Positions 8,312-47,900 of a stretch of DNA of 64,000 nt are shown here, in pieces. The translations under genes and the position numbers were made by a program. The DNA is from Octopus bimaculoides. Its lineage: Eukaryota. A model generated the notes under the pieces. That model did not search any database. It was not told the origin of the DNA and was given only the letters and a program-made list of their open reading frames with translations. The DNA lies in NCBI RefSeq assembly GCF_001194135.2, contig NC_068990.1, positions 25,019,959 to 25,083,958 on the forward strand, given 5' to 3'. Within the stretch, counting starts at the first letter, position 1. Each line of letters begins with the position of its first letter.

Positions 8312-8452
8312 CATANNNNNNNNNNNNNNNNNNNNNNNNNNNNNNNNNNNNNNNNNNNNNNNNNNNNNNNNNNNNNNNNNNNNNNNNNNNNNNNNNNNNN
8401 NNNNNNNNNNNNNNNTATATACATATATATATACATACATATATATACATAT

Positions 8453-12499: not shown

Positions 12500-15072
12500 C
12501 TCAGACCTTTTATTTTTCAACCATCATCCCACTTTTTTATTACTAATGCTTTTGCAACATTTTCTTGCTTTTAGTTCAACAAATATTCTTTTTTAAATTG
12601 CTGCCAACAAATTGATCAACATTAAAATGTCTTGCACATATGTCGTCGTCATCAAACATCTATGTTCCATGCTTGGTGTGGGACAAAGAAAAAGAAAGCA
12701 GAGAGAGGAAGGCAATAAAAAAGAACAAGTCATCATCATTATTATATATGCAATCAGTTTTATTTGACAAAAGAGGTTCAGCGTACACATTGAAAGGCCT
12801 CTCGATACACTATTGTAATTCCCTAAACAAAAACGTTACATCTCCAACATCACCAATCATCCTCGACATCCTTAATTATTATTATCATTATTATAATCAT
12901 TATTATGCACTCATTCACTGCAGCCAGAGAAGACAATTTCTCTCCTGCTACAGACGTAACCTTATTGTTTGCTACAAGAGCGGCAGATAGAGCAAAAAAA
13001 AAAAAAAGAATTTTTTTTTTACCTTTGAAAGAAGGAATAATTCCAGAATTAGAAATGGAATGAGATAGTTGTTATTTTTGTTCTTTTTTCCCCCTTAAAA
13101 AGTTTAATATATAAAAACCAAAATATTTTACAAATTATCAACAAATGCTTTAAAGTGCTCCAGCGTCTTTATTTTACCAGGATCTGGTGCAAAGCTTAGG
13201 TTTTACTCTGCAAAAATATTGCCAATTCAGATTGAGTGTTATNNNNNNNNNNNNNNNNNNNNNNNNNNNNNNNNNNNNNNNNNNNNNNNNNNNNNNNNNN
13301 NNNNNNNNNNNNNNNNNNNNNNNNNNNNNNNNNNNNNNNNNNNNNNNNNNNNNNNNNNNNNNNNNNNNNNNNNNNNNNNNATCTCTGGAACAAAGAAATA
13401 AAACAGCAAAAATGGCACGTTCATTGTCTCTGTGTGTGTGTGTGTGTGTGTGTATGTCTGCCTATGAATGTGTGTCCGTGTGTGTTTTTTTTCTCTTCTT
13501 GTTTTTTTCAAGTGTTGCTGCTTTGTGGAGAAAGATGTTAAAGCAATTCGAGAGGTGGAATGCAATGGGTGACCAATTTCACAAAGAACAGCCGTTAAGA
13601 ATACAAAAACAAACCACAAACAAAAACAACAAAATATATATATAAGTAAAAAAAAAAAAAAAGGAGTTTGAAAATACATTGGATGGCATCGCTATCATGT
13701 TATTGAAGAAACAGCCAGTTATACAGCAACACCACCAGCAGTAGTGGTTAGCAATGCTGATATTGCTACACTTGCTCAGACAGCAGAAAGGAACATCATC
13801 GCAATACGTACATTCTTCAAAACAGATTATGGAAGAAAAAAAATATACAAAAACGAAATGGTAGCGCCAAAAAAAAAAAAAAAACAATGAATAAATAAAA
13901 TAAATACATAAATAAGAATGAAAACAAAAATTTCAAATCAAAATAAAATTGTTGCCCTCCCCAACCCATCTTCCCCTTTGTTACCCATGGAAAATAACAA
14001 TTTTTTAACTTTTTCAAATAATGTATTAAATAAGAATTTGATTAAAAGAAAAAAATTATATATATATATATGTAACAAAAATGAAAAAAGAAAAAATTCT
14101 TATTGTCCTGTTTGTTTGTTTCAGAGATGAAAATTTTGTGGATTGATTTAGAAGAAAGAAAGGATTTAAAAAAAAAAAAATGAAAGATTAAAATGGTTGC
14201 AGACGAGCAATTTTCTGTCTGTTGTAATAATCACTGGCAACAATTTCTCCTACAGTGACGGTTAGATTGGTGCTCGCCGACTCCCTCTAATTTTATCACA
14301 GTTATACATCATGTGGAGAAATAGAAAAAGCACTAAAATTTGTTACACATTGCTACAAACGTAGATTCATCGTACGTGTAGGCACACGGCTTTGTTTTGT
14401 TTGTTGTTTTGTTTTTTTCTGTTGTTTTCATAATATTTTCGTTTTTGTTTTGTTTTTTGGGCCAAACAAGGACAGCAGCCTTGTCTATCTGTCTAAGTTA
14501 AGAAATCAGACAGGGACGGTCCAGTTATTATATTTGTCATTCATTGGACAAAGCAGAGGTCAGGATTGAAGTTTTAAAAAAAAATTCACAATATATTTTT
14601 AAAAAAAACCAAATTCTTCCAACTTTGATGTTGGGCAAGAATATTGAAACACATTGTAGTTTTAATTGTGCCAGCAGAGAGACAGTTACCTCTCAGAAAT
14701 AGTGGAGAAACTTGTCTGACGCTATAGCCAATGTTTTATAGCAATCAAGATGGCTACAACAACTAAAATCAGAGCCACAGCTAGGATTATTAGATTACGT
14801 GATGTTTTAAGCAGCCAAATAAGGTTGTAAATGTTATGGCTGTGATCTTGTGTTGACTCCATAGTGGTCATGGCATGAGTAAGTGGGAGAGAGAGAGAGA
14901 GAGAGATAAATAGATAGGGTAGAGGAGTCCGATAGTTATCAAGAAAGCTTCTGCAAGGATTGATATTGCTGTGCAAAAAGCTTTGCTATTAGATAAATAG
15001 GTTACTGGCAGAAACCACAACAGAATCCTGACTGATTGCAGTTGGAGTGGAAACAGAATGATTGGAAGCAGT
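12500..15072 (-). other. Probable long U-rich 3' UTR of the spectraplakin (about 2.5 kb, spans an N gap)
   Basis: Follows the stop codon; TE-free, many long T runs on the - strand; AATAAA candidates on - strand near 12425, 12510 and 12540; the exact end is a guess. Confidence 0.5.
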
Positions 15073-15335
15073 TCATTTCTTTTTCAGTTTTGGAATCTTC
15101 GAACCATGTCTCAGCGACGTTACTGATGATGAGCTTGAGTGAGCCACATGTGATCCACTTCTGCTTGGGACTACATGTGTTTGGTAAGTCATTGTAGTTT
15201 GTTTACGACCACCCAAGTTCCGAGTTTCAGTCTGCACCGTCGTGTAAACTTCAGGTTCACTTGTTTCTGATATATCACTTCCAGTTCGGCTTGGTGGGCG
15301 ACTGCCTGTACTTGAACAACGACTTGTGGTACTCA
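15073..15335 (-). CDS. MACF1: Spectraplakin terminal coding exon with SxIP motif
   Basis: tcttcttttag|(V)[19 protein letters not shown]...[11 protein letters not shown]; SRPPSR and C-terminal SKIP (15091-15102) typical of EB1-binding spectraplakin tails. Confidence 0.92.
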
Positions 15336-18300
15336 CTAAAAGAAGAGGAAGAAAAATCAAAATATGTATTTATCTATTTATTCAGACCACTCTGTCAAAT
15401 GTAATGCTTGGTTATTCACATCAATTTGATTTGAATTAGTCAAGCATTATCTTGTAGCTTTGAAATTTCAATGACAGGAAGGTTTATTTTTAGAATAATA
15501 TTGTAGGGTAAGCGTGAGAGGCCAGATCTGACTAGTTTAAATGCTAAAGATGGAATCATTAATCTCTTATATCAATGGTTCTCAAATGCAGTCTATATAA
15601 GATTTTGCTGTTAAAATTTATGTGCAATAAATTACTTCTACTTCTACAATATTCGAAATATTTTAACAATTTTTTAAACATCAAATGACTTCAAAGGGTC
15701 AATAGAGAAAAATAGAAATCAAAGGGTTCATCGGGCAAAAAATGGTTGAGAACCTTTGGATTTATAGTAAGAACTGATAGCATTTGCCAAAGGATTAACC
15801 CTTTTGTTGTTATATCCCTGTTGAATTACACTGCCTTGTTTCAATGAATTTTGAGGGTTTTAATTTAGATCACTTTAAAACAGGGAATTTGTATCATAGA
15901 ACCAGGAATAGTCTCAGACAGGTTGGGTTCAAAAGGATTAAGTCACACTTAGTTTGGGATGATTCTGTTTCAATTTCTGAAAATAATGAAGAATTTAGTA
16001 AAATAGTTTTGTCCTTATTAGCCTGATGTTTTGAACATGAATAACATGAAATTTATGGAAGTTTTAATTAAGATCACTTGTAAATCTATTAATGACCTGT
16101 AGGGACACCATATTTCATTATGCAACCATAATATACTATAAAGTATATTAAACGTTTTTATAATTCAATACTGTGTTAACAGTGCTATCGCATCACTTCT
16201 TAAGGTTATTTCTACAGATTTACCATAGAAATTGTAGCCGGCACTAATTTTGTTATTTTGAAATCATAATATACTACGAAGAATATTAAACGTTTTTATT
16301 TTTTTTATATACAAAATATCATAACAAAATCAGTGCTGGTTATAATTTCTATAGAGAATCTGCAGAGATAACCATAACACTTGTAAAGTGTTTGTATCAT
16401 AAAACTAGGGCAAGCTTGAGCAGGTTGGTATCAAAAGGTTAAGTGAAATGATTACAACAGAAGCCAGAGCCTCTACATAGTTATTCAAGCTGCAAGAAAT
16501 CGCAACCAAATCCTCAAATCATATACTACTGCCTTAAAAAAAAGTGAAGGAAAACAAGATGGTCTCAACTGCAACATTAGAAATTTGAATACAAATCTAC
16601 TGGGGGTCTGAGTTCAATGAACACCAGCCAGGTTATCAACCTGATTTTGACAATTTATTTTTGTGTTGTTTGCTGTTTCTCAATAGATTCCCAGAGACAA
16701 TATCAAAATGGACAAAACTAAATCTTAGAGAGGAGTTTTAGTGTTCTATTTCCTCAACCATCTTCATACCAACCTAAACAGGACAGATTATTTCAGTGCT
16801 TTAGTCTCTAGCGTTCTATATTACCTACATGGTCCTGCTGGGGCAGTATTTTCAAGAGCATACTCAACTGTATTGACCTTGGAAAGATGAAAAGCACATT
16901 TCAACCTGGATGGGATTTGATAGAAGGGACATCACCATGTTATTTTGGCTGATACTCTAATGAGGCTGCAATGCACCCACCGACCTTTAATTAAAACTAC
17001 GTGAGATTTACAGACATTAAGTGAATGTTCATAGTTTTACACATACCTGGACTTGCCACTCCACCAGGACTACGCATGCTACGAGGGGTCCCAGCTCCTT
17101 TGGAATATCTAGAGTATCGACTGCCCGCATCAGACCGGGCCATAATTTGTCTAACCTCAATATCAGGATTTGACCGAATACGTTGCCGATAGTTGTTAGG
17201 GTGATGGGCTCGACACTGAAAAAATATTTTAGAAAAAGATGTAAATATTTTATAATTACAAAAATAGAATTTCAACAAGTGGAATTTTATAAACTTTTAT
17301 AGAACAAATACTATACATTCAACAGTTTAAAAATACATAATTTTTAGATTTAAAACAGAACGGTGTGAGAATAATTAATAGTTTCTAGTTTTGGGAGGTT
17401 TTGTGGCATATACAATACATATATATATATGTATATATTCTGACACATTCTGATTGAATCTTCCATGTGTTAACATGTACTTCCTTGCGACATTGTAAAC
17501 TTTCATTTAATCCAAATATCCTTGGCCTGCGATAAACACTTCACTTGGATATTTACCACTTCCGAGATTCTGCTCACTATAAAACATATGTAGCCCAGAT
17601 CTTATCTACTCCATTCCTTAACTCTTGTGTACTTATTTACATACACAGTAACCCTGGTTACCTACTTTTTTCAGTTTATCGTACTTCAATAAGAAAAAAT
17701 CCATCCACGACCTTCCGTCTCAATAAACCACTCTTGTACCAGAAAGTTGCTTTTTTATATTTACTACGGATTGCTTGAAGCTAACTTTCTTCCTACACCT
17801 TGATCCTTGGATCTTATATATGTAAAAACATATGTATCCTACATACTACGTGAAATGTTCTGTTGTCATCTCTCTTAGTCCCATTAAGTTTTGATGTACC
17901 CCAATAGTTGGTGAATTTTTGACCCTCTACACATTTTTGTTGCATAACATAATTTGTATCTACCCTTGGGTACCAAAAACAAGGGAAAACACTCAAAATT
18001 TTTTAATTACCTGATCTCTATGTCCCCTCCCCACCAGCATATGTTTCAAAAATTAAATAGACACCAAATTCTTATATATGTTAGCAATCATAGTTTAAAT
18101 AATGTGTATTCTGAATTTTGCTCCAAGATGAGGTGAATCTCAGAGTAGACTGTCAACTTTTAATAAAACAGACATATCAATGCCCTTTACCTAACGCATT
18201 GACTTATACATCAGATAATGTCTGAACTATGCAAAATATATTTTTTTAATATACTTCATAATTTTTACTATTACTTATTGTAATATACATTACAATACTA

Positions 18301-26851: not shown

Positions 26852-28715
26852 AACATATATACGCACACAAACAGTTTCCACCTACCAAATCCACTCACAA
26901 GGCTTTGGCTGGCCTGAGGTTATAGTAGAGGACACTTGCCCAAGGTGTCACACAGTGGGACTGAACCTGCAACCATGTGGTTGGAAAGCAAGCTACTTAC
27001 CACACAGCCACTCCTACTCCTGTTTAGATACAGAATGCTTTCAATAAGAATGGCCATACATCTATTGATGAATGTGTGTGTCTATGTGCTTGTCACTTTC
27101 TCTCTTCAGACGCACACAAATAACTGGCTGCTGGAAGATCCTGTCTGGCAACAGGACTCTGCACCATGCCACACAAGCAGGAGAGCCCAGTCATAACTGT
27201 CAGACAATTTCTGCAACCATGTCACCTCTAACATCTGGTCACCTAACTCCCCAGACTGCAACCCCCTTGAATATTATATGTGGGGTGCAATTGATCAAGA
27301 GACCAACAAAACTCCTTGTAACACCAAAGATGAACTGAAAGCAAGGTTTATGGCTGCATTCACCAACTTAAACAAGGAGACCATCCAGAAGAGCTGCAGG
27401 AGATGCCAAAGTCATCTGGAGAGTGCTGTTGAAGCCAATGGCGATTTTATTGAATTAATTAACTCTTGAGTATTTCAAGATATTTTTGCGTAATTTTGGT
27501 AAATATATCTGTTAAAATGAGATGTCAGTGTTATTTTCATTTTTGTGTAATTTAGACAACAGTTTATTCACTGCACCCTGTATATATGTGTGCATATGGA
27601 GAGAGAGAGAGAATATATGTGTGTTGTTTCTGTCTATATGTACCCCACTGATCACCAGGCCAGCAGGGTGGCATTATTTAAAAGCTAAAACAATGTGAAA
27701 CACATTGAGACCAGTGATGTATAAGAACATTTGATAATCTGGTCAATACTGTGATGGTTCGTCAAGATAGCTGCAGTCCAATGATTGGAACAAGTAAAAG
27801 AACATAGAAGAATGTTGATCAGAGGAATGGTGTTTAGTATTACAAAAACAATCTGCTGAAATCTTTAGACCAATCATGGTTTCTTGGAGGAATTTCTGAA
27901 CATGTCAATGATATGTTGTGAGGAAGATTTCTAGAATAGGAAAACAGCAAAAATTTCTATTAATTGATGAATCTATATTATTCATTTCAGTAAAACTCAG
28001 AGCTGACAACTTCTGTTAACCCTTTGGCATTCAAATCAGCCATAATATCAGCCCAAATATTTTGTTTTATATTCAAGTTAGCCAAGTCTGGCCATTCTAA
28101 AACTAAATGGTCACATCATCGAAATCTCAAAGCTATAAGATAATTCATAACAAATTCAAAGTAAAATGAAAAAAAAAAAAATTACATTTTTTTTAAAGCA
28201 ATCTGAATGATAAAGGGTTAAAGAGAAAATTCTTTAAAAATGGGAGTTTAACAAAAAAAAAAAGGTATTTTAATACAACTATATTCCATTTTATATGGAA
28301 ATCAGAACCAATTCAATGTAAAGTTCTAGTGGGGTGCTGTGAATATTTAAAGAAGCCATTGCTGAGGAAAGAAAAAGGAAGCTACAATAACTGGAGCAAC
28401 AACAACAGCAAAAGAAACAACACATCTGTTTTCCCACCCCCACCAATCCTCACTAATGGAAGCAGAGTAGCAACAAAACCTGACAACATAAAATGTAGCA
28501 GAAGCAATGACCTAAACTAAGAGAACAATAACTGATGCCAAAGCACAACAAAGGGGAGGATTGGCCCAGATTCCAAACAAGCCCAGTTGATTACTTCAGG
28601 AAGCATATCTTAGTTATACAGCGAGGAATCCGACAGGAAAAGAAAGGTAATGTATTCTGTAGAACAAGAGTAGCATAGAACTTTCTGGAAACATTGGCTG
28701 AAATGACTGGCATGT

Positions 28716-28784
<69 letters not shown>

Positions 28785-31700
28785 TGGTGGTGGTGATAAC
28801 AATGTCAATGAAGATGGTTTGAAGTAATAATTGTTTGTGATTTAGGTACAAGGCCAACAATTTGAAAAAAGGTGGTAGTTGATATCACAGATTTTGACTG
28901 GTACTTTATTTTATAAACCCTGCAGATATCTTAAAACCACCTTGATAATGCTTGTCCATGAAGGGTTCTGTTTTGTCAACTTTCTCCCCTGACCCACATT
29001 TCATCCCCTCACACCCAAAAAGCACTGGTGATGGGGCCACATAAAAAGCATCCAGTAATTAATTATGCACCTTCCACACACAAAAACTATCTTCCCTGTT
29101 AACCTTTCTCTGATATTGCTGGACCTCTTATGTGTCCTTGGCTTACATTGGGTACATCTTATGGAGTTCCTATTGTTGCCTTTTCTACAGATCAAGCAGG
29201 GCCATCTACTTGAAGGGATTTGTGATTTGTCCACCTTCCTGCTTTCTAATACTTTGGTTTTTGCTAGGTTAACTCTAAGTCCCTTTAATTCTAGACTTTG
29301 CTTCCACACCTGAAACTACTTCTCTAGTTCTGGTAGTGATTCAGCTATAAGAGCAAGGTCATCAGCATAGAGGAGCTCCTAGGGGCAGCCTGTCTTGAAT
29401 TCCTCTGTTATCACCTGGAGGACTATGATGAACAAGAGGGGGCTTAGGACTGATCCTTGGTGAACCCCTACTTGTACCCTAAATTCTTCGCTATACTCGT
29501 CAAACCTCACCTTACTGACAGTATCCCTGTACAAGGCTTGTACAGCTCTCACCAACCACTCATCTATCCTTAGTTTCCACATTGACCACACGATAAGGGA
29601 TCAGGGGATACTGTCAAAGGCTTTCTCCAAGTCAACGAAAGCCAAGTAGAAAGGTTTATCTTTGGCTAGGTATTTCTGCATCTGAAATATAGCATCAGTG
29701 GTGCTTCTCCCTGGCACAAACCCAAACTGCATCTCATCTAAACAAACTCTGTGTAATTAGTTGGGCTATGATCCAACAATTTGATACCGCTGTAATTATT
29801 TCTATTCAAGGCATCAGCTTTACCTTTATAGTAGTTGACTATGGTGCTGCTACACCAGTCGTTGGGTATAACTCCTTCGTGTATCACCTGGTTAACTATT
29901 CGTGTGACTAGATCATAGCCTACACTGCCAGATATTTTAAGCATCTCAGTGGTGATTCCTGATGGGCAGGGGGCTTTCCCTGTCTTTATATCCTTAATTG
30001 CTTTATGTACCAAAGTACTGTCAATCTGGATAGCTGGTCTCTCAGTTGGGTCAACATTTGGCAGCCTCTCTTCCTCCCATTCATTTTCTTGGCATCTCCG
30101 AGTCTCTTTCTTTGCAGCATCATTAAATGCAAGTGAGCCATCATCCATGTGGACACATTTCTCTCCTATGACATCACGATTCTCTTTCACACACTGCCTT
30201 GCAATTCAAAACACTTCAAGTATCTGGTCCTCCCAATGCAGAACATTTTCAAATCTCTTTTCTGCTTCCCCTCTGGTTAAGTAAGCCTGTCTCCTAGCTT
30301 CCGATCTGGCTATCTGATACAATTCCCTGCTACCACCACATTTCCAGTCCTTCCAAGCCTGTTCCTTGTTCCTAATAGCCCTGTCAACTACATTGTTCCA
30401 CCACCATGTCACCTTAGATCAAGAGGGGACTTTGCACCATCCACAGATCTGGTCAGCAGCCCTCAACAGGTTGTCCTATAGAAACCTCCAGTTGTCCTCC
30501 TATATCATCCTCTATTTTGTCAAAGGCTTCCAGTAATATGTCTCTAAATCTGTCTATTTAGAGGATCCTTAAACTTCCAGACCCTTCTTTTACATACTGG
30601 TCATCTTCTGAGCAGCCATTTAGCCCTGATCCTTAAGTGGCTAACAACTAACCTACACTGTGGGGTACATTCTTCACCTGTTGCCAGCTTCTTTCAGATG
30701 ATCTCCTGTGGAATGTATCTTACACGTATACTCGCTGCCTGCCAAATCACATGCTTACTTTTACCACACTTTCGTGTGTCAAAAGGTAAAGGTGATGCCT
30801 TGATTCTTTTGGTTAACAACTTGTAAAAGTTTGATATTAAATATGCAATGACTTCGAGAGGAATTGTGATCGACTTTTGAGGCAGCCTTGTGGAAAGCAG
30901 TGTGGCTTGTTTCCAGTGTTCCATGAAAGCATGTCTAGCCATGGGGAAATATTGCCTTGCATGGAAACAGGTAAGGGTTGGTGACAGGAAGGGCATCCAA
31001 CAGTAGGAAATCTGCTCAACAAACTCCATTTGATCCATGTAAACATGGAAAGTGAACAGTATAATGATGATGATGATAGAAACATGTAACTTAAACTCAA
31101 ATGAGAGGATAAACACTTAACTATTGCAACCTCAAATTAATTACTGCTTCATATCAAGGGATAGAAAATGCCAGAATTTAATTAGTGAGAAGTGTTATTA
31201 AATGGTAATTTTAAATAATTACCAAGGTTTGAATTATTTGATGCAAGAAAATGCCTTAACTGCAAAAATGTAAGCATAAATTCATGTTTAGAATGTATTC
31301 ATAAACTGAGAAATTATAAAGTTACCAGACTATCTTATTCAAATAATGCAAATGATAGTATTTAAGGAATATCCCAAACAAAGGTATTTTATGGGGGAAG
31401 TTCTTCCAAAAGTATGATGAATGCAAACAAAAGAACAAGAGTTAATATTAATGAAGTGAAGATGCACAACTTCCAACACCAAATGATCCAAATTACATTC
31501 AACAGTTTTGATTTTAGGTGATAAAACAGTGAGGCAGCCATTTTGAAAATGAATTGTGAATAGAGTGTTGAGAACCACAATCAAACAGTGTGTGTGAAGG
31601 AGAAACAACAGTGCTCATGAGACAAATAGCATAAGAATATAATGTTAAATGGGATTATTATTCATTGACTTAAAATCAACAGCAAAGACAGGATTTCATT

Positions 31701-34700
31701 AGTAAAGAGAGAGAAATAGAAAGAAGACATCTGACAATATTGAACAACCTTCATATCATGATGAAAGGAAATATAAAATAAATTTCTGTAAATGAAAGTT
31801 AAATATGGAAAAAATAAATATAAAATGATTTCTTGATAAAGAAGTGTTGAGTTAGGAGTCACAAGAAAACAAAATGCAATGGTTTTAACCTCTTTTCCTG
31901 ACCAAATGGATTAACAGTGAATGAAGTCACTTGAACTGGGAGTTTTCAATGTTATTTGCTAAGAGCTTAAGAAGCTACGAATGTAGCATTTGCCTCTTGC
32001 ATGTTGATAGTAAACAATATACAACAATATTCAGTATTTTACATACTAGAAGACACTGAGAGAATTTTTTAGCTAATCCACTGAAGTCTTCTTTGAAATC
32101 AATTTTTAGTTTTAAACTCACAAAGGCATGAGAAAATGTAAGTTTGCTTATGTGTGGTTTTACTTCATTTATTTGTTGGTGTATCTAATGACTAATTTAC
32201 ACAAGTACACTGGCAAATGTGATATTCAAAGACATACTAGTAACTGTGATATTGGACCATGGTAGAATATTCGAGACAAAAAGGAAAGAAACTGGTAAAC
32301 CTGCTCCTGAACATTAAATTTAGATACTTATAACTCAAAAGTGTTAGAGATTTTTCAATCAGTAGATCAAGTTTAACCAAAGGGCACAAAATTTCATTTG
32401 AGTTTGGATTAATTCAAATGTGATTATATTTTCTTTCTCTGGAAGACCTAACAGTGAAGGGGGTCACCTTAGCATCTACAACAGTTAAATAAACAAACAA
32501 ATGAAACTAGCATTATATAATGTGAAATCTCCATGAAAATTGAGAAAATATAAAAAAGTAACAAGACCAAATATTACTTATGAATCCTACCTACTACTGG
32601 AATGGTGAAACTGATGCAAACTGACAACTGAGAACTTTGTAGGATTCTATAAACTTCCATTTCAGTTTCCACTGAACAAAATCTCTCAGCTTTAAAAATG
32701 ATGCTATGACAATAACATTATTATAATGCAAAAGAATTCAGTATATTTATCACATTCTACAATCTTTAATTACAAAATGGTTAAATGTCTTAATTTCCAA
32801 AGAAGTTCCATATTAAAAGTAATTTCATTTGTGATCCTAGGTAAATGCAAATATAAGCCCAGCCCTTTGATTATATTCTGTGTGTGTCTATACATATTTC
32901 ATATATAGAACAAGTGGTTGGCATTAAGAAGGGCATCCAGATATAGAAACCAAATACTGGAGCTCGACACAGTCCTCTGGTTTGTTGGATTCTATCAAAC
33001 CATCCAATTTACACCTACATAGAAGACAGACTTTAAATGATGATGATTATAAAAGAATACCTTATCATCATTTAATATCCACCTTCCATCTGGTGTGGGT
33101 TGAATGGGTTGACAGGATCCAGCTGGTGCCAGCACGGAAGACAAGTTAAATGATGATGATACACACAGGGTATTATCCTATATATGAAATATATATCTAA
33201 ACTAAATTATGTGTTTAAATTCTATTACGTACATATCTAAATTAAAATGTTTTAGAATTACATATTTAGAACTCCATATTCTTACCTGAAACTATAAGAA
33301 TAAAATAACACAAAAAAAATTCTGCTACAGTTTGATGGTTGACAACAGGAAAAGCATCAAGCCATAGATATGGTTTCATTAAGCAGTAATAAAACCAGCT
33401 TGAAGCAATAAAGATTTACAAACCAAGCCAACCCATAGAGAACAGAGCTAAAGACATAACAAATGAGGCTATAAAATGGAACTAAAGTGTAATACATGCA
33501 ACAGAGATGAAGGGTAAACGGAGGAGGAAGAGAGAGTTTTTCTGAAGAGCAGATAAGGAAGAAACATGCTGGTTGCAATGTGAGGAAATTGGTCAAAGTA
33601 ATCCATAGGTCTCAGAGGTAATGTTTTTGGAAAATGTCACTAAAATAATGGAGACCACTGAATGTGTAGCCTTGAGGTAGAAACTTATTTCTATTGTATT
33701 AATTACACTGTGATATGAACTGGATTTTCAGTTTAATAAATATAGTGAAGAATTATTAAAAGAAGAGGTAATGTGATGAAGAGAAAGACAGGGAAGAATG
33801 TTGAAACACATTGAAAAAAAAAAATAAATAAAAGTGGGAGTAGATGGTATTTTGATGACAGGTGATCACAATGATGGTATTAGATCTGTTAAAAAATTGT
33901 GTGTGATGGAATGGTAGCACAATAAAGAGTTTTTGCAAATGTAATTTTAGGGTAAAATACATGGAATTATCTGAACTGATTAAAAACAAAAATCAGTTTG
34001 AAGTGAATTTAGTGGGCAGTGTGATCAATGCTTCTAAAGAGGAGGGGGAGCTGACGTGAAGAATAGGGAACAACGAACAGCCTGAAGGCAGTCTTGCAAA
34101 CAGAGCTGCATTAATGATATTCAGTAGTTGGGTGGGGGTTTTTTTTTTATCTAGAGCTGAAATTGTGAATGATTTTTAGATGTAAGAAATATAAAAAAAA
34201 TAAAAGGGAGACAGTTACTTGATGACAACAATAACGATGATGATGATGATGATGATGATGATAGTAAATGGTGATGATAAATGTAGTTGTGTCCTACTGT
34301 TAATTAAAAGTATCAAAATGAATGTTTAATGGTTCTTCATGAAGGTTTTACATAAGATGAAAAAGTTAAATTAACAAGATTAAATTAATGAGAATGAGGA
34401 GTTAGATGAAATTATAAAATTCTTCAAGAATGAGAAATAAATGTGGATTAGAAATGACAACATGACCTCCAGATAATATCTGCTGCCATAATTATTACAA
34501 TTCTGAAATGAAAGTGAATTTAATTGACACAGGAAATGAGTTATGACCAAAAAAGGCTATCAGCTGACCAAGGAAGCAACAAAATATAGTTCCATTATTT
34601 AAAATAAAAGATAAAACTTTAAATGATAAAAAAATAATTCCAACTGAAGATAAAACAGAGTCTGCAATTAATATTTTTGAAGTTAATTTCCAAGAAATTA

Positions 34701-36417
34701 TTAAAAAAAAAAGAAAATTGTATGAAGAATATTTTAAAATGGATATTTTTATATAAAACAAAGCATTTAAAGAAATTTTTAAAACTTTAAAGAATTTGGT
34801 AAATTTCTTTGAAAGAAAATTATCTTGTAAATATACTTTACCTCGGCATGGATCATTTTTAACGAGGAATTCATCTAACGCGACCCAGCCTCCGCCGACA
34901 CGTACCATTACTGTGCTACGTAGAATCCGAACAAGACGTAATTTTTGTGAATCACCAAACTGGAGGGGTGGGAAAAAGAAGAAAAAAAGATAATTAAAAA
35001 AAATTAGCTCAATGTAAATAAATAAGAGAAATGGGAAGGAAATAGAAGCAGTTAAACCAAAAGAAAACCTAACGAACAACAGACAAAAGAGAATCGTTTA
35101 AAGAATTTGATTGGAAGAATGGAGGAATTATTACTTACTCGATATTTTCCTTCACCAATTTTATGGATTCTGAACTGAGTAACGCAGGTACATCGGCCGA
35201 CTTGTTTGCTTACTTCATCTTGAATCCTCTCCGAGTCTGTTGCAGGTTTACCAGTCTGAAAAGAATCACGTTGCAAGGACACCTTTATATCATAGCAGAA
35301 ATCAGAGCTGTTTTTGTTAATTACAATTTTTACTAATTACTAGAAATTGTAGCTATTACTGTTGTTGCTAAGGCAGCAAACTGGAAGAACTGTTAGCACG
35401 CCAGACAAAATGCTTGGCGGCATTTCGTCCGACTTTGTTTTCCATCCTTTTGAGGCCAATTAAATCAGTACCAGTCAAATACTGGAGATCAATGTAATCA
35501 ACTACCCCGCTCCCAAATGCTGGCCCTGTGCCAAAATTTGAAACCATTTTTATTATTTTAATGTGGTAGTAGTCCTAGTTTTTCCTACTCAATTAGACCT
35601 AAGATGAGAAGGTAGTTGATTGAATGCCATGAAGAATAAGGAGCCAATAGGATGTAGGGAAAGAGGGGCTTTATGTAGTCACTTCATAGAGGTGCATGGC
35701 TTAGTGTTTAGAGTGTTGGACTCATGATCCTAAGATTGTGGGCAATCTGATGTGTTCTTGAGCAATACACTTCACAATATTGATTTCCACACACAGTTAT
35801 AGATAAAAATTCTTGCAAAATAAATTCAAAAATCTTTCATCTTTTTACACTGTCCCTATTCTTTCTTATATTCACGTTCTTGTTCCAATTCTTTCTGATA
35901 TTCCACTTGTACCTTGACAGTATGCCCTGACACCTCATCATCTCTTTTTCTCTTTCCATCTAGGTTAGCCACATATCTCTTCTATAGTAAGATGCTTGTC
36001 CCTACACCTGTCCCTCTATCAAACTTTACCTTCTTAACGCCAAGTATAAAGCCACTTCTCTCAATACTACACTTCACTCAGTAGTTTGGTGACCTCACTG
36101 GGGCTTCATTTATCAGATAGAAAAAGAAAAAAACCCAATGTATGAAGAGAAGAGAAACTCTAACAATGTAGATACTTACATCCCTATCGGGTCTCAGAGC
36201 TGCAACAAATTCTTTGTAGTTTATGTAGCCATCTTCATCTTTATCAAATATATTGGCTACTGCCTCCATTTCTAGTTTTGTTGTTGGGAATTCTAGTAAT
36301 ATAAAAATATAACACATTAGACAGAATAACTGTAGGGAACTGAACCCCAAAACATGAAAATTAAATTAAAATTCTTGTGAATGGATTTGATAGACAGAAA
36401 CTGAAAGAAGCCTACCG

Positions 36418-36460
<43 letters not shown>

Positions 36461-39400
36461 ATGCATGTGCAAGTGTGTGTACATTTGTGCTTCTCTGAAA
36501 TTGTTGAGCTACAAGCAAAGCAGTGATGTCACTGTTGTTGTTTCCCCTGTCAACAAAATATCTGTTAGCTTTTTGTCTCCAAAGCCATGTGTGATAAGAG
36601 ATTTCTTTGTTGAAAAGCAAGTAAGAGTATCCAGCTGTTTCACAATGCCACAACAATATAGTCATCTAACTCATGCTAGTATGTAAAAAAACGGACATAA
36701 AATAAGTATTGCAGTAGTAGTAGTAGCAGCAATAACAGCAAAAGTAAGAAACTCACTTGAAGAGATGATTCCATCAATAAATTCTTTACGGGTGACTTTT
36801 CCATCATGGTCTTTGTCTTGACGTCTGAAGAAGTCCATAATTCTTGACTTATTATGATGCATCCAACGTAGGTAGCGTTTCCGCCAATCATCAAAGTCAA
36901 AGTTCTTCATTCTCTCGACTTCATTCATATATTCTTGGGCATCTTGTAGTTTTCTTTGTCGGTCCATAGCCAAAAGCCACACTTGCTGCCATTTGGTAAA
37001 CAGAGCCCCAACTCGTGGGTTTTTGAATTGAGGATCTGGTGTACGGCGGCCAGTGTCTCGACTGCAAAATAAAAAGTAATATTTAAGAAATTCTTATTCT
37101 TTAACAGAATTTTTTTCATCTCTTACAGAAGAATGATATGTTAACACAAGTTCTTCATTTATTATATTCACTCCACCCCTGTCAGCTGTTCCCCATCTTG
37201 CAACCTCTACCCACGCACACCCTATTCTGCCCTCTCCATTCATTTCATACTTTAGCCCCTTTCAGACCTGGGCCCCTCTGTCTAACTTCACCCTCCACCT
37301 GGGCTAAAAAATAATTAGTTGCATACACAGCTCAAGAGTAACGATTATTTCAGGCAAACTAATGGACAGAATCAGCTGCATCTTCTTCTTCTACAAGTGT
37401 GGTTTATTACTGCTTTACTAGGAATCCAGCAGAGATGACGTTTAACCTGTTCCTGCTAAAGCAAGAATATAGTGTGACAGGGTTAAGAAACAATACACAC
37501 ACCTCATCGTCATCACTACTTTAGCTCTTCCTAGCTCTACCCCATCCTCTCTTCTATAAGGTGAGTAGTTATGTAGCTCCTCTACAGCAAGAAACCCCAT
37601 TTTGCTGTCACTTTGCCTCATTTCCTACCATAAAAGCTGCTTCTTTCAGGGGTCATAGTTTCTTGCTAGATGCAAGGACCAGTCAAGTACTTGTCTTATG
37701 GTATCATCAACCTCCCCTGCTTCCACAAAACTGCTGGCCTTGTGCCTAATTCAGAAACCATTATTACAGAGTTACATAAATTGAAGAAAAAAAATACAAT
37801 TTTAGATCCAAGAGTCACAGACAACAGGTGGACTTGTGCAGTTGTCGAGTGGTATCCAAGAGATCAGAAAAGGCCATTTGGAAGGTCACCATGACAATGG
37901 TAAGATCTAGTTAACTAATTAGGGTCAAGATGGAAAAAAATGGCACAATCAAGATAGAATTGGAAGCGTATTGTGACCAGCAGTGTATAACAGCATCTGA
38001 TGGTCTGGTCAATACTGTGATACATGAATAAAAGATAGGATAGTCATGGTTAGAACACTTTTAATCATAAGGGTGACCTTGGGGTTAAACAATACCCAAT
38101 CCTATTGCTCCCCTTCATTTCCCACAAAGCAAAAAGAACATTACCTTATATTGCTAAAAGACTTTCTAGTTTTCCTAAATATGGGTATTTGAGAAGATTC
38201 TGCTGTTGTTGACAACCGCCTCTTTTCAGTCTTCGTTAATTTATCAATTTCTGGTTGTTTTGATGAGATTTCACCTTGTAAGTCCTACAACACAAACAGG
38301 CAACCAGTGATAATGGATACAATAGCAGGGGAAAATGAAAGCGGTTAGGGATGAACTAAATATATTAAAATAGAATGTTTACTGATTAAAAAGGAAAATA
38401 TTGATTTCAAGAATTCATTTAGGATAGCATTGATCGTTATAGGTTAATTATAATAACAAAAACAAAGTTACATAGTTAACAGAAGAGAGAAATAGATAAA
38501 GAGAAGGTAGAAAAAATGTAAATGCAAAAATATATAAAGACAGACCTGATGATCTTTTATAAGTTGATTGATAACTTCCAGATTTTCGGGTATAGCCATT
38601 TGGTTTTGGTTCAACAATGTACCTTCAGCATCAGTCAGCCATTGAAGCAGATTTTCAAGACTAGCTGCGTTTTGGCGCATAACCTTCAGACCATCTGCCA
38701 AACGTAAGCCTCGTTGCCGGGACCAGGAGGTTAACTGGTTAAAGTAAAAAAGAAAAATAATTAAAATGTGACAAATTATAGGCACAGATGTGGCTGCATG
38801 GTAAGAATTTGCTTTCTAACCACATGGTTCTGGGTTCAGTCCCACTGTATGGCACCTTGGGCAAGTGTCTTCTACTTTAGCCTCAGGCCAACCAAAGCCT
38901 TCTGCATGGATTTAGTAAACGGAAACTGAAAGAAACCCATTATATATATATATATATATATATATCTCCACATGTGAATCGTTGGCGATTTTCTTCCTCC
39001 GTCTTCCTTTTTTATTGGACGTTCCTCTATTCTGATGAAGAGCGTTGCTTGAAACGTTAAACCATCTTTCTTTCCTTCTCTGAGCGTCTACTAATATTTT
39101 ACATGTACCATGTCCTCGCGTGGTTTTTTTTTTGTGTTTGTTCTTCAGTTTTTTTTTTGGGGGGGGGGATTTACTATATGTATGCATATGTATCTATGTT
39201 TGTATGTCTTTGTGTTTGTCCCCCATCACTAAAGCCTGAAATGTGGTGCTCAACCATGACAGAAACCAATAAAAGAATGAAATTCTTTATGGAACTAAAT
39301 CCTCCCAGAAATTGGTGGTGGATAAAAGAAAGGAATTTTTACCTCTTCCCACCGAGCCCGTAATACTGACAGCCAATTTTTTAGTGAGGACAGGGAATCA

Positions 39401-41630: not shown

Positions 41631-44600
41631 TCACTGCCTGGAATTGAACTCGGAATCTTGGGGTTAGTAGCCCGTGCTCTTAAGCACTACGCCATATGTT
41701 TATGTCTCCCCAAAATATTTTTCTCTTCACCAATTTGTAGTTTTCTGAATAGTGAAGGCATGTGGCTTAGTGGTCAGGGTATTTGGCTCATGATTGTAAG
41801 ATTGAGAGTTCATTTCTCAGCAGCGCAATGTATCCTTAAGCAAGACACTTTATTTCACATTGTCCCAGTCCACTCAGCTGGCAAAAATGATTAGTACCTA
41901 TATTTCAAAGGACCAGCCTTGTTACATTGTGTCACGCTGAATCTCCTTGAGAACTACATGAAGGGTATGCATGTCTGTGGAGTCCTCAGCCACTTGCATG
42001 TTAATTTCACAAGCAGGCTGTTCCATTGATCAGACCAACTGGAACCCTTGTTGTTGTAACTGACGGAGTGCTAATTAACATTTTTAATTTTAAATATTTG
42101 GCTTTTAGCTGAAGCATCTAAAAGTGTTGTGCTGATTCTGACTAAGGATTATGTTAACAGTACGAGTATGTGTGGGATACTCAGCCACTTAAAGCTAAAA
42201 TTCAAAGAGCAGGAGTGGAGTTGAAACACCCAGAGTACTCAATGTTAAAACCGTTGGACTATCTATTTATATTTACTACATGTCTTGGGCATGACGTTAA
42301 ACTGCACCCTGAAGTTCTCATGAACAGGGGTAGCACCCTATTAGCTCCCCAAGCCTGGGTTACAGTGAAGCTGTTGGCAGCAGGACCGTGGTTATCATGA
42401 GAGGTTGGAGAAATGACTCTCACTTGGATTTTATGATCAATGTCTTGCATAATACAGAGTACCACCTGTGTTTTATATAGCAGAGATTAACCTCTTTGTT
42501 AGTTGGTACTGTGATTGAGAAAGGAAACTTAGGGACTCCATCTCTCATGTTTTCTCCTGCCCACCCCCTATGATATAACTGACAATGTGCAGACTGACAC
42601 AGGACAGACATGAGTGGAGGGCCATAGTGGATCAATAGTTTGAGCCTTCAGTCTAAAGAACAAGACATGTTTATAGCTGACAGGTTTGTATTGTCTGTAT
42701 ATAAAGTTACACCATGTCCAGTTATATTTTAGGTTCATTCTCACTGCATGGCAGCTAGTCCAAATGTCTTCTACTGCAACCCTGGAATGACCACTGTTTT
42801 GGGGTGGATTTGGTAGAGAAAAACTGAGAGAAGCTTCTGTGTGTGTGTGTGTGTGTGTGTGAGACTTGACATCATGTGATGGTTGTAAATGAGCATCACC
42901 ATCTTGCATGTGATGTAATTCATTTCAAGTGTTCCATAAAAACATGCCCAACCATGGGGAAATATATCCTTGCTTGGAAACAGGTGAGGGTTGCTAAGAA
43001 AAAGAGCATCTGGCCATGGAAAACATACCTCAATGAATTCCATCTGATCAATGTGAGCATGGAAAAATGGTTATAAAATTCAACCAAATTAATTGAATAA
43101 CCCTAATGAAATCTGCTGATGGCTTTATAATACTTTTTACATTTTAACAAAGGAAACTAACCATTCTCTGAGCTTGTTCTAGACGTTCTTGTTTGTTAAC
43201 GCTCAATGTACATATACGGTCCCATAGGGTTGTTAGTTCTATTAACTGTGCTTGTTGTTGACTTGTGTCTTCTTCAGATTTTCCTATCAGTTCTTTGGCC
43301 GCATTGCGTACAAAAGAAACAGTCTTAGATCTGGCACCCAATTCTTGTTGGAAAGCCTTTAAAAGAGAGAGAGAGAAAAGACATTAACATTTGTATCAAA
43401 TTTAGAATAAGCATTAGAAACATAAAATATGTCAGGTATTTGATGGTTGTCCCAGAAGTGTGAAATATACCAAGCATATAGGATAATTGTTAGAAATGTG
43501 AACTACACAAAGTGCAGCAGAAAAATCTCCCATATTTTACACAGTCATTAGCATGGCACTAGTAAAGTTAGGCAGATGGCAATAATGTCTTCATGTAGCT
43601 AATTCTTTACTGTCTTCTTTTTAGTTTGAAACTGTGTACAACATGCATTTGTTGACTATGATTTTTCTTTTATGCACCCTGTATCATATTTATAAGTTAG
43701 AAATGTGTTGCATGTCTCAACTATAAAAATAAAAACAATGCTGTTTTTATTTTTTTTAAATCATTCTTGCTGTATATTTTGAAATTTTATTTATGAAATA
43801 AAATGTAAAATGCTGTTTAAAAGCTGAATGTAAATCATTAGACATTAGTGGAAATAAGATAAAATGAGTCAATAAACAGAAAAGCATGTGAAAACTCAGT
43901 TCCTTGTTGGAATTGAACCTAAATTCTTATGATTCAATTGAAATGTCTTTTTCATCTATAACATCCCAATTTTTATTGATCTCATTAGGTAATTCAACAT
44001 CCAACCAGATCAATATAGTCAGCTTTATATTGATGTTTTTCATTCTTGGAAACTTTAATAGAGTCAATAAAACAAATACTATATTCTAAAAAATAAAAAT
44101 AAAAAAAACTCGACAGTCGAGCTGAAAGAAGTCTGCTTACCTTGTGTATTTCTGTAAGGTTGTTAACAGTTTCAATATCACCATGGACAGGTTGATCTTC
44201 AGATAAACCGGGTTCAGATTTTGATAACCAGTCCAACAGAGCTTGCAGTGCATCATTGAATTGTCCAGAGAACAGTAGAGCCTCTTCTAGATTTCTTTGT
44301 CTGAACAAATGAAAAATAACAATTCATTCTTTCATAAACATATCACTTGAAGGAGAGAATGGGAAGCTGTGACAGTTGTGTGTGTAAATGTGTGCCTGTG
44401 TTTAAATCTGTGATCGCTTTTATGAATGTTCTGACAGGAAGGCGGCGAGCTGGCAGAAACATTAGCATGCCGAGTAAAATGCTTAGTGGTATTTCGTCTG
44501 TATTTACGTTCAGAGTTCAAATTCCGCCGAGGTCAACTTTGCCTTTCATCCTTTCGGGGTCGATAAATTAAGTACCAGTTGCGTACTGGGGTCGATCTAA

Positions 44601-44921: not shown

Positions 44922-47900
44922 TTTATTGAAACCAAATCTTGTCCAACATAATTTAAGCACTCCTTTATCATTTGGCCAACATAAATCAATGTGTGTGATA
45001 ATTTTTAGAGGTGGGATGTTGCAGTATAATAAATAGCCAATATGGAGAAATACAATACTTTTTGGAACAGACACACACAAAAGATGAAGAGAAAGTGGTG
45101 CATGCCCACCAGACAAGTGAGGTTCTTAAGAGCTAATATTTAACTTGATAAACTATCAATAGATCTGTTTACTTGGAGAAAAAATTCCTCATTCAGACAG
45201 AGCACACCATGTAAAAGATGGCATCGTTCTGGAGAATTTTTCCATTTAATTAAAACTCTAACATATATAATTTCCATTTTTCTGGCTTAGAAGAGGAATA
45301 GCAGTGCTTCCAACCTTCTCAGGGCCTCTAGAACTGAAGGTAAGAATGAAAGAAGTTATTTCTCTAACAGTAAACCCATCCCCAAGTTTTTGCAACAGAT
45401 TTAAGTTTGCTCAAAGTACAAAAGCCAGATGGTGAACTCAAACCAAGTGATAGATTAAATCTACAACCATGGATATTCTTCAGGGACAAGCACCAACTTC
45501 AAACAGAACACTAAATTCTAAGCAAGCATTGTAAAGAAAAAAGACTTACCGGGCTACAGACTTCCCACAAACTGTATTCCATCTGCCCTTCAATTCACTC
45601 AGTTTTTGTTGAATGGCAGGATGATCGCTAACTGGTGAACGATCTTTCAAGTTACGAGCAGTACGATTTATTGTATCATACACTGGTTGTTTGCCACCCA
45701 GGTTCCTCTGAAACTCCTGAAAAATATCAAATAAATATTGTTTTAGGTAACTGAATGACATATATAAAAAGTTATAGTCCTTGTTAATCTGAAAGATTCT
45801 GTGTGGCATTTGAAGTTGTCAAAACTAGTTTTTGTGTAAAGATTTTATTGAATAAGAGAGAGAGAGAGAGTGAGTGAGAGTGAGAGAGAGAGAGAGAGAG
45901 AGAAAGAGAGTATATATAATAAATATAAATTGCAGTTACCTTGTGCTTTGCAATTTGAAGTTTAATCTTTGCTGGATCATTGCTGATCAATGTGTCTGAA
46001 TCAAGGATTTTATCTGCTTCGTTAAGCCAGTTAAGTAACTCATTCCATAAATTATGGAACTGAAAGATAAAGCAAAAAGTGAATACAAAAACTATAAGCA
46101 AATCATAACAAAAAAACTGTATTTGCTGTCCGTAAAGTAAAAAATAGAGGAGGGATAAATATTGATAAGAATATATATTTTTTTATAATTATCAAATAAG
46201 CAGCTTAAAATTTCCATAATTTTCTGTCAATTCACCTGTAGACAGAAACTGTAGATAATTTACAGGATTTAGTTTAAGTTCACTACATTCTGAGTTTGAT
46301 TCATTGCTATAGTACCAATAAATGGCACATTATACTGAAGTTCCCTGGCCACATTATGGACCAGACATTGTCCTCGTGTCTGAGTCCATCAAGCAAGTAG
46401 GGCTGCTGGAGCTGACTGTCCCATGGGAAGATCACATGGAAGAAGCTTTTGAGAGAAAGCTCTCCAAGTATGTAGGTCTGGTCAGTGACTGCCAGCAGAG
46501 GTGTCTCCCAGTGGAGGTAGGATGCAGGGGTTTCACAGCCCGTTCCCTGACCAGAGCTTTCAGTAGTTTGGGCATTGAGGAAGCGAGAAGGAGGAAGGCC
46601 ATCCGCAGTACCACCGATGCGGCAGAGAGGGCTTCAAGATGGCTGTGGATCAAAAGAGGAGAGCCATGGGGTAGCTATTTGGCCATCTGGACATAAGCTG
46701 GAGTCTGATCAGCCCCAGCTGGGTCACCTGGAGGAGGCTGTATGATGTTGAAAGACTCGAAACACTTAATGATACCAGGTACATCACTGAAGATGTGTCC
46801 AGATGCATCAGTCATTGATGTATGCACACAACAAACCAAATAAATACTTTTGATAGCAACCTTTCCAAGACTGTCCTTGGTTCTATGATACAAACTTCAT
46901 ATTTAAAATTATCAAAATTAAGACCTTCCATCAAAATTTCGTGTTAATTTCTGTTCCAATTATTTGTTATTTTCAGAATTGATTGGAACAAAGGTGGTGT
47001 ATATCAACAGAAATGTGATAGCAAAAGTGTTAAAATAATAATTGTTATATTTCTTGGTTCAAATTCAGCTGAGGTCAATTTTGCCTTTCATTATTTCAGG
47101 GTCAATAAAATAAGTGACAGTTGAACACAGGGGTTGATGTAATTGACTGAACCCCTCCCTTGAAATTCCTGGCCTTGCGCCAAAATTTGAAATCAATATT
47201 TATTTCTTGGCATAATTTAAATGTAGGAGCTAGATGCAGTTGATTTACCCTTTTGTTACCATATTTCTGCCATATAGGATTTTCGAGCGGGATCGTTGCC
47301 GGTGCCCCTAGACTGGCTCATGTGCGGGCGACACATAAAATCTTTCCGAGCGGGATCGTTGCCGGTGCCCCTGGGCTGGCTCATGTGCGGGCGACACATG
47401 AAATCTTTCCGAGAGGGACCGTTGCCGGTGCCCCTGGGCTGGCTCATGTGCGGGNNNNNNNNNNNNNNNNNNNNNNNNNNNNNNNNNNNNNNNNNNNNNN
47501 NNNNNNNNNNNNNNNNNNNNNNNNNNNNNNNNNNNNNNNNNNNNNNNNNNNNNNNNNNNNNNNNNNNNNNNNNNNNNNNNNNNNNNNNNNNNNNNNNNNN
47601 NNNNNNNNNNNNNNNNNNNNNNNNNNNNNNNNNNNNNNNNNNNNNNNNNNNNNNNNNNNNNNNNNNNNNNNNNNNNNNNNNNNNNNNNNNNNNNNNNNNN
47701 NNNNNNNGCTCTTGTGTGGGGTTGTTGTAGGATTTTCGAGCGCGATCGTTGCCAGTGCCCCTGGGCTGGCTCTTGTGCGAGTGACACATGAGGTTTCTCG
47801 AGCGAGATAAGCGTGGCCGTTGCCAGTACCGCCTGACTGGCCTTCGTGCGGGTGACACGTAAAAGCACCCACTACACTGAGTGGTTGGCGTTAGGAAGGG

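Follow-up and report, generated by a model that had tools for sequence, protein, structure and literature searches.

Neural microexons of bilaterians that depend on SRRM3/SRRM4 were reportedly described by Irimia et al. in 2014. The signature features of eMIC exons are a UGC, a UCUC or CU-rich tract, an AG exclusion zone, the branch site and conserved flanks (PMC8797185; bioRxiv 10.1101/2024.09.17.613571). The enhancer of SRRM3/4 microexons is bipartite (UCU_CUC...UGC), and in 74-79% of the SRRM3/4-dependent human microexons the UGC locates between the branch point and the AG (bioRxiv 10.1101/2024.09.17.613571). The 5' splice site of eMIC exons is strong in mammals and weak in flies (PMC8797185; bioRxiv 10.1101/2024.09.17.613571). 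Fly eMIC exons have a weak context at both the 3' and the 5' splice site, a strong CUAAY branch site is one of their traits, and their conservation is limited to the genus (PMC8797185).

The C-terminal module of the spectraplakins (MACF1/ACF7, dystonin and Drosophila Shot) consists of a spectrin rod, an EF-hand pair and a GAR/GAS2 domain. The same order is found in the host gene on the minus strand of the window, the whole stretch of 64,000 nucleotides analysed here: Pfam matches to Spectrin (2.4e-51), EF-hand_7 (1.2e-12) and GAS2 (7.5e-32) follow one another, and the spectrin repeats lead to two canonical EF-hand loops and then to the GAS2 domain. The host protein shares 53-57% identity with annotated MACF1/dystonin proteins, its best homologs are named MACF1 or dystonin, and it aligns to PDB 5VE9 and 5X57. 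Judged from domain order and homology, the host gene is a spectraplakin of the MACF1/dystonin/Shot type. The gene extends past the high-coordinate end of the window with its 5' part, and the domain calls cover the 3' part. Neither a reverse-transcriptase-like ORF nor the last coding exon showed a Pfam match.

An initial annotation placed a 9-nt neural microexon in one intron of this gene, between the last spectrin repeat and the EF-hands. This location is essentially right: the exons before the intron contain the end of the last Pfam spectrin match, and the two EF-hands come later. The exon borders read ...AATATAAG/gtaatg (last base 38145; slashes mark borders) and ttttgcag/TCGAGAC (first base 37061), as had been proposed; identical junctions occur in the relative L001, and orthologous junctions of the intron were found in L001, L027 and L030. 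Removal of the intron in one piece would join ...SFSNI(S) to the downstream-exon peptide. The upstream exon is 74% identical to its ortholog in L001, and the downstream exon aligns to the MACF1 EF-hand structure 5VE9 starting at RMKNFDFD. The features of the intron and of the candidate are collected in Table 1.

Table 1. Positions of the host intron, its flanking exons and the candidate splicing features within the window, with predicted junctions.
Feature	Position	Strand	Description
Upstream exon	38145..38284	-	End of last spectrin repeat and start of linker
Host intron	37062..38144	-	1083 nt, phase 2; junctions read, orthologous junctions found
Downstream exon	36757..37061	-	Linker, conserved helix, EF-hand 1
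AG at far limit of AG-free zone	37504-37503	-	
Putative 3' splice region	37456..37502	-	AG, pyrimidine-rich tract, TTAAC branch-like motif, 45-nt AG-free zone
TTAAC branch-like motif	37486-37482	-	At -28
TGC (UGC)	37461..37463	-	At -8..-6 relative to the 9-nt unit
Acceptor AG	37457-37456	-	
Candidate 9-nt unit CAGGAACAG	37447..37455	-	Read directly; S-R-N insert, phase 2/2
6-nt variant GAACAG	37447..37452	-	Second AG of tag-CAG tandem acceptor; R-N insert
Donor GT	37446-37445	-	
Putative 5' splice site CAG/gttaaac	37440..37446	-	T at +3, A at +5, A at +6
Predicted junction, 9-nt form			...GCAATATAAG-CAGGAACAG-TCGAGACACTG...
Predicted junction, 6-nt form			...GCAATATAAG-GAACAG-TCGAGAC...
Longer predicted junction, unit skipped			GCAATATAAGTCGAGACACTG
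Longer predicted junction, 9-nt form			GCAATATAAGCAGGAACAGTCGAGACACTG
Longer predicted junction, 6-nt form			GCAATATAAGGAACAGTCGAGACACTG
Predicted island-microexon junction, L001/L027 lineage			GCAATATCAG-(AAGGAGGAG or ATTTGGATCCAGAAGGAGGAG)-AGATAGCGGTCG

On the minus strand, the candidate reads ...cttgctttag/CAGGAACAG/gttaaa, or, with longer context, ...cactatattcttgctttag/CAGGAACAG/gttaaac. The coordinates and letters given for it were exact, and the claimed phase and predicted three-residue insert hold. Skipping the unit gives the translation ...SFSNISRDTGRR..., the 9-nt unit gives ...SFSNISRNSRDTGRR... and the 6-nt form gives ...SFSNIRNSRDTGRR...; none of the three contains a stop codon. 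The proposed NAGNAG with its 6-nt variant is also present. Like known NAGNAG tandem acceptors, the tag-CAG motif has two AGs three bases apart, with products that differ by one codon; unlike established ones, it belongs to a putative exon. The upstream TGC exists as well, one base away from the claimed distance of 7-9 nt.

Comparing the candidate with eMIC microexons revealed a partial likeness. Both forms preserve the frame within the 3-27 nt, multiple-of-three size range, the UGC locates between a branch-like motif and the AG, the acceptor of the 9-nt form is weak, and the insert would fall into a disordered region of a cytoskeletal protein. Unlike eMIC microexons, the candidate has no UCUC/CU-rich element (no UCUC or CUCU in -80..-3), no extended AG exclusion zone (45 nt, which is also the median for 19 constitutive acceptors in the gene, range 25-148) and no CUAAY, since the only branch-like motif near it is TTAAC. 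Nor was conservation of its flanks detectable at the depth of the distant relatives compared. The weak donor CAG/GTTAAA matches the fly eMIC pattern and not the mammalian one. A TGC within -20 occurs at 7 of the 19 constitutive acceptors and at about 25% of decoys; the UGC, which had been taken for the signature of a neural microexon, is therefore non-specific here.

Scoring the splice sites revealed different qualities for the two forms. With a generic matrix, the 9-nt unit reaches 0.7 at the acceptor and -1.1 at the donor. This acceptor lies under all, or nearly all, real acceptors, both with the generic matrix and with a gene-specific matrix trained on 17 junctions of the host gene. Under the generic matrix, each of the 19 inferred real donors of the gene outscores the candidate's donor, which falls into the lowest third under the gene-specific one. 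The acceptor of the 6-nt form scores 6.1 and 13.9 with the two matrices, respectively, and this form is the top-scoring unit of the host intron, which holds 40 AG-N(3k)-GT units. By the gene-specific matrix it ranks first among 1700 sense-strand units; by the generic matrix, its summed score is matched or exceeded by 13 units on the sense strand and 7 on the antisense strand.

Decoys of like quality are common. In the 64 kb, 26 sense-strand and 27 antisense-strand units equal or surpass the 9-nt candidate at both sites, and 6 and 7 of them, respectively, have a TGC within 20 nt. Among random introns matched in length and composition, 41% hold an equal or better 9-nt-type unit, 16% hold one with a TGC too, and approximately 2% hold a unit as good as the 6-nt form or better. 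The 9-nt form is no more than expected by chance, and the 6-nt form is rarer. In cephalopod-type introns rich in AT, chance should produce an in-frame AG...GT pair with a UGC close by about once per 10 kb, so that a UGC alone is unable to nominate neural microexons.

On the basis of these comparisons, we consider the 9-base stretch to be probably a chance pseudo-exon in ordinary spectraplakin intron sequence. Its AG and GT would be juxtaposed by chance, and the spliceosome would ignore the pair or use it at noise level. The 1083-nt intron would normally be excised in one piece, and the adjacent TGC and the tandem tag-CAG would be incidental. We infer that the unit is not spliced into the transcript. 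Like intronic pseudo-exons, the candidate is an in-frame AG...GT with a plausible acceptor, a weak donor and no detectable conservation, and its frequency is the same on the sense strand, on the antisense strand and in random sequence. Unlike ordinary pseudo-exons, its 6-nt form tops the window distribution under one of the two matrices, and a similar unit is found in a conserved island of relatives.

Conservation was searched for in the orthologous introns of relatives. The best relatives found share 77-82% protein identity, with none closer in the collections searched, and third-codon identity to relatives is 0.51-0.57; in JGI metagenome contigs, only other lophotrochozoans matched. Neither the unit nor its flanks found a match in the orthologous introns of the very distant L001, L002 and L027; these introns have decoys of their own that score equally and are unrelated. 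Because the relatives are so distant, the missing flank conservation is weak evidence for a pseudo-exon.

Aligning the orthologous introns of L001, L027 and L029 with each other revealed an island of approximately 350 nt, which is 89-90% identical overall, compared with 67-75% in the remainder of the intron, and reaches 100% identity in 40-column windows over L001 6713-6772. At its centre lies cag/AAGGAGGAG/gtcagt, and the sole difference among the relatives inside this unit is a synonymous AGA/AGG change. The island unit agrees with the window unit in length and phase, has a similar tandem acceptor and shares 6 of its 9 bases; among 372 other 9-nt AG..GT units in the window, only one comes as close. 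The window unit is 689 nt from the upstream exon, and the island unit approximately 775-841 nt.

These features of the island speak for a real alternative microexon of 9 nt, with a 6-nt NAGNAG variant, that would insert S-R-N or R-N ahead of the EF-hand/GAR module. The preserved frame free of stops, the complete 3' region (TTAAC, pyrimidine tract and AG) and the high scores of the 6-nt form, both in the intron and on the sense strand with the gene-specific matrix, point in the same direction. As part of this explanation, the unit may be the ortholog of the relatives' AAGGAGGAG, the flanking regulatory sequence having turned over between lineages. Several observations argue against it, and we regard a real microexon as possible but rather doubtful. 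Once bases dictated by the AG and GT signals are set aside, the two units agree at 4 of 7 positions, and in the relatives the first AG past the pyrimidine tract gives a 21-nt exon and not a 9-nt one. The relatives' island could not be detected anywhere in the window, and the two units have unrelated flanks. Exons with a comparable degree of conservation within the lineage nevertheless still reach 72-78% identity when the window is compared with L001. The donor is weak, decoys as good are frequent, and in the collections searched no protein derived from a spliced transcript, be it from this species or from any cephalopod-like one, spans the junction. No microexon of a cephalopod or of MACF1 at this position was found in the literature searched.

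A more far-reaching form of the microexon explanation appears quite unlikely to us. It would hold that cephalopod spectraplakins possess an ancient conserved microexon of 6 or 9 nt, CAGGAACAG here and R-AGGAGGAG in the L001/L027 lineage, which would add basic residues to a Ser/Arg-rich linker. The flanks would have been fully turned over between lineages, and the UGC of the window would be the sign of a move to eMIC-type neural control in its lineage. We notice that the L001/L027 island is as conserved as coding exons. A still deeper ancestry of the unit was considered and rejected: the phase-2 intron is also present at the gastropod-like locus L030 but holds no similar unit there, and the lophotrochozoans L003, L004 and L005 code the linker position without an intron.

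The initial annotation had further proposed that the insert tunes the EF-hands. The candidate site is within a hypervariable Ser/Arg-rich linker, approximately 50 residues ahead of the solved EF-hand module (5VE9), and the linker length differs by tens of residues among animals. This function is unsupported, because the linker is so variable in length and the site so far ahead of the module. In gastropod-like spectraplakins the linker before the EF-hands contains tens of residues of GRRTPD repeats, whereas it is short in this species and the L001 group; no cassette exon coding such repeats was found in the window intron or in L001. We also considered whether the downstream helix (NPRVGALF...) could be helix C of the last spectrin repeat, with the site in the B-C loop. 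This idea found no support, and the Pfam spectrin match covers profile positions 7-70 only, not reaching across to the NPRVGALF helix.

As a special case of a real microexon, the unit could be neuron-specific, with the eMIC domain of Srrm234 binding the UGC and the insert modulating the EF-hand module. Spectraplakins are neuronally important genes, which fits this idea, as does the place of the UGC between branch-like motif and AG, the interval that holds it in most SRRM3/4-dependent human microexons; the weak 3' and 5' context resembles that reported for fly eMIC exons. Against it stand the non-specific UGC, the missing UCUC/CUCU half of the enhancer, the AG-free zone of ordinary length, the lack of CUAAY and the remote, hypervariable position of the insert. 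Moreover, no TGC occurs in the 66 nt that precede the putative orthologous unit of the relatives. The available evidence leans against neural eMIC control, which we hold to be improbable.

Least probable of all, and by our estimate hardly credible, is a functional non-coding site, either a decoy or intermediate splice pair that affects removal of the 1083-nt intron or another intronic regulatory element: its only favourable point is a good acceptor next to a weak donor, whereas the intron is short, the motif differs from the juxtaposed AG/GTAAGT of recursive sites, and no conservation, RNA family or unusual RNA structure (z = -0.48) was found in the window intron region. Very long introns are where recursive splicing typically occurs. 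No unusual RNA structure was found in the relatives' island either. An intronic RNA gene was rejected, as neither the host intron nor the island contains an Rfam family, and so was the idea that the site stems from a repeat or transposon, as the unit is not repeated in the window. The host intron shares no repeats with the rest of the window except 37970-38021, which matches 27704-27755.

Returning to the chance pseudo-exon, the points that we count in its favour are the decoy counts, the random introns, the weak sites, the non-specific TGC, the unmatched relatives and the variable linker; counted against it are the excellent 6-nt acceptor, the relatives' island, the rare 6/9 similarity and the great distance of the relatives. 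The result is mainly cautionary. If the microexon were true, it would add to the lineage-specific ones an example from a disordered linker in a large cytoskeletal cross-linker, of modest interest for tracing how microexon programmes evolved outside vertebrates and insects. For the study of microexon evolution, the conserved island of the relatives is a more promising lead than the window unit.

In the minus strand, the candidate unit and its surroundings read ...cactatattcttgctttag|CAGGAACAG|gttaaac, and direct reading of the window bears out the initial annotation in that a 9-nt unit with splice-like borders is found there. The second AG of the tandem acceptor tag-CAG falls within this unit, so that a 6-nt form is possible as had been proposed. 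The upstream exon ends with ...AATATAAG|gtaatg (last base 38145) and the downstream exon begins at ttttgcag|TCGAGAC (first base 37061), enclosing a phase 2 host intron of 1083 nt. Both exon ends agree with the earlier annotation, and both junctions are also present in one related genome. The translation becomes ...SFSNISRNSRDTGRR... when the 9-nt form is included and ...SFSNIRNSRDTGRR... with the 6-nt form. The upstream TGC is present too, but it was read at -8 to -6 and not, as claimed, 7-9 nt upstream. Elsewhere in the host intron, a 52-nt segment (37970-38021) has an 83% identical copy about 10 kb away at 27704-27755, and a (CA)n microsatellite occupies 36377-36526 of the neighboring intron.

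Sequence elements of the candidate unit
Feature	Position	Strand	Basis
Candidate 9-nt unit	37455-37447	minus	direct read
Acceptor AG of the 9-nt unit	37457-37456	minus	direct read
Donor GT of the 9-nt unit	37446-37445	minus	direct read
TGC upstream of the 9-nt unit	37463-37461 (-8 to -6)	minus	direct read

We consider the candidate unit to be probably a chance pseudo-exon. Splice sites were scored with a generic metazoan position weight matrix and with a gene-specific matrix built on 17 junctions inferred in the spectraplakin gene. Under the generic matrix, every one of the 19 inferred real donors outscores that of the unit (-1.1), only two of 19 real acceptors fall below the 9-nt acceptor (0.7), and the 6-nt acceptor scores well (6.1). 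The gene-specific matrix places the donor of the unit among the weakest third, the 9-nt acceptor under all real acceptors, and the 6-nt acceptor near the top.

A unit like the 9-nt form is expected by chance in a 64-kb window read by eye. The host intron alone contains 40 AG-N(3k)-GT units. Throughout the window, both sites are at least as strong as those of the 9-nt form in 26 sense and 27 antisense units, of which 6 and 7, respectively, are accompanied by a TGC no more than 20 nt away. Among first-order Markov introns matched to the host intron in size and composition, 41% contain a unit at least as strong as the 9-nt form, and 16% one that also has the TGC. The 6-nt form is rarer, being reached in 2% of these random introns. 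It ranks first of 1700 sense units by the gene-specific matrix, and its summed generic score is equalled or beaten by 13 sense and 7 antisense units. Unit scores under the generic matrix form a continuous distribution. The top sense-strand unit under that matrix is the microexon-like gtgttattttattcttatag|TTTCAG|gtaaga (33286-33291, minus strand), which has a much stronger donor and sits downstream of the exons encoding GAS2 in this gene.

That the unit is a real microexon seems doubtful. If one assumes as a prior that real microexons occur in at most about 1% of introns, and sets this against a decoy rate of 0.1-0.4 per kb, the unit alone would merit only a few percent. Orthologous introns were compared in distant relatives, namely an ENA contig with the whole intron (L001, 4.3 kb), one covering its 3' 2.5 kb (L002) and three covering its 5' 1.4 kb (L027, L028 and L029). 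The candidate unit and its flanks have no better-than-chance match in these introns, which hold unrelated decoys of equal score. Third-codon identity between the window and these relatives is 0.51-0.57, close to saturation, and at such divergence the missing match argues only weakly against conservation. In flies, conservation of eMIC exons is limited to the genus (PMC8797185).

The relatives' intron contains an island of its own. Over an intron background of 67-75% identity between L001 and L027/L029, an approximately 350-nt island (L001 6553-6905, L027 about 3330-3680, and also in L029) has an overall identity of 89-90%, on a par with the coding exon next to it (90%), and peaks at 100% in 40-column windows across L001 6713-6772. 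Its center reads ccacttttag|ATTTGGATCCAG|AAGGAGGAG|gtcagt and offers a 9-nt unit in frame, which becomes 21 nt long if the first AG is used; a GTAAGT donor further on gives open 45/57-nt versions. The sole variation within the 9-nt unit among relatives is a synonymous AGA/AGG, and the unit had ranked second of 84 in its intron before the island itself was spotted. The L001/L027 lineage may thus have a genuine small exon conserved at this island. No TGC occurs within the 66 nt upstream of its unit. The island unit resembles the window unit in its intron, phase and length, in having a comparable pair of closely spaced acceptors, and in 6 of 9 bases, a degree of similarity that just one of the remaining 372 AG..GT units of 9 nt in the window attains. 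However, the match shrinks to 4 of 7 positions once bases fixed by splice signals are discounted, the flanks are unrelated, and nhmmer with the island found nothing in the window's host intron, whereas exons of equal within-lineage conservation still retain 72-78% identity between the window and L001. Further points against orthology are that the island has no Rfam match or unusual fold, and that the gastropod-like locus L030, which shares the phase 2 intron, has no similar unit. Our estimate for a real microexon was raised because of the island and the 6-of-9 match, and lowered again because flank homology is missing. These gradings are judgements on rough likelihoods and not computed posteriors.

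Within the chance granted to a real microexon, the neural eMIC-dependent exon initially proposed takes up the smaller part and is improbable. Such exons are described as having a UGC near the 3' splice site, an enhancer of bipartite UCU_CUC...UGC form, AG exclusion zones of great length, branch and pyrimidine signals that are both distal and strong, and a 5' splice site that is strong in mammals and weak in flies (PMC8797185; bioRxiv 10.1101/2024.09.17.613571). Of this signature, the candidate unit clearly has only the UGC; its weak donor would fit the fly pattern and not the mammalian one. There is no UCUC/CUCU in the 80 nt upstream of its acceptor, no CTAAY branch site was found there, and its AG-free zone of 45 nt equals the median for the gene's constitutive acceptors. 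The UGC adds little to the case, because a TGC occurs within 20 nt at 7 of 19 constitutive acceptors of the same gene and the other eMIC features are missing or average; on the features examined, the neural reading finds no support. That the unit is something else altogether is very improbable.

By its predicted protein, the host gene is a spectraplakin, since the spliced reconstruction around the unit contains four Pfam spectrin repeats followed by a pair of EF-hands and then a GAS2 domain, is 53-57% identical to proteins annotated as MACF1 or dystonin, and aligns with 5VE9 and 5X57, solved structures of the EF-hand and GAR parts of MACF1. Exons of this long minus-strand gene are spread over the window between about 15076 and at least 62960. 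The exon structure in common with L001 is compatible with a cephalopod origin, though no proof of it. The Pfam positions confirm that the site lies between the last recognizable spectrin repeat and the EF-hands. The suggested tuning of the EF-hands finds no support, as the structured module starts about 50 residues after the site (5VE9 alignment) and the site falls in a Ser/Arg/Thr/Pro-rich linker whose length varies by tens of residues among animals. Gastropod-like relatives carry long GRRTPD repeat tracts there, and linker sequences are unrelated among the compared loci except for one GRRTPEP unit. The linker intron, phase 2 after AG, is common to the window, the L001 group and L030 (9392-10354). 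It is absent from three lophotrochozoan contigs (L003 2233-2742, L004 339-629, L005 971-1261), in which the last spectrin repeat, linker and helix share one exon.

At two donors of the gene inferred to be constitutive, ATG|gttagt (43161-43162) and CAG|gtctgt (38545-38546), both on the minus strand, position +3 departs from the consensus, and therefore T or C at this position is tolerated in the gene. A Ser-rich open exon at 15076-15369 (minus strand) has no Pfam match; its end resembles SxIP, the EB1-binding motif found at the C-termini of spectraplakins, so it is probably the last coding exon. Past the 3' end of the gene, two plus-strand tRNA-Asp(GTC) genes (236-307 and 1617-1688) of equal Rfam score lie 1381 nt apart. 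N runs, marking assembly gaps, occur at 8316-8415, 13243-13380 and 47455-47707, the last within a spectraplakin intron. Inside an intron lie minus-strand ORFs at 29738-30418, including ...VIPNDW..., which have no Pfam match but resemble the N-terminal region of reverse transcriptases from non-LTR retrotransposons.
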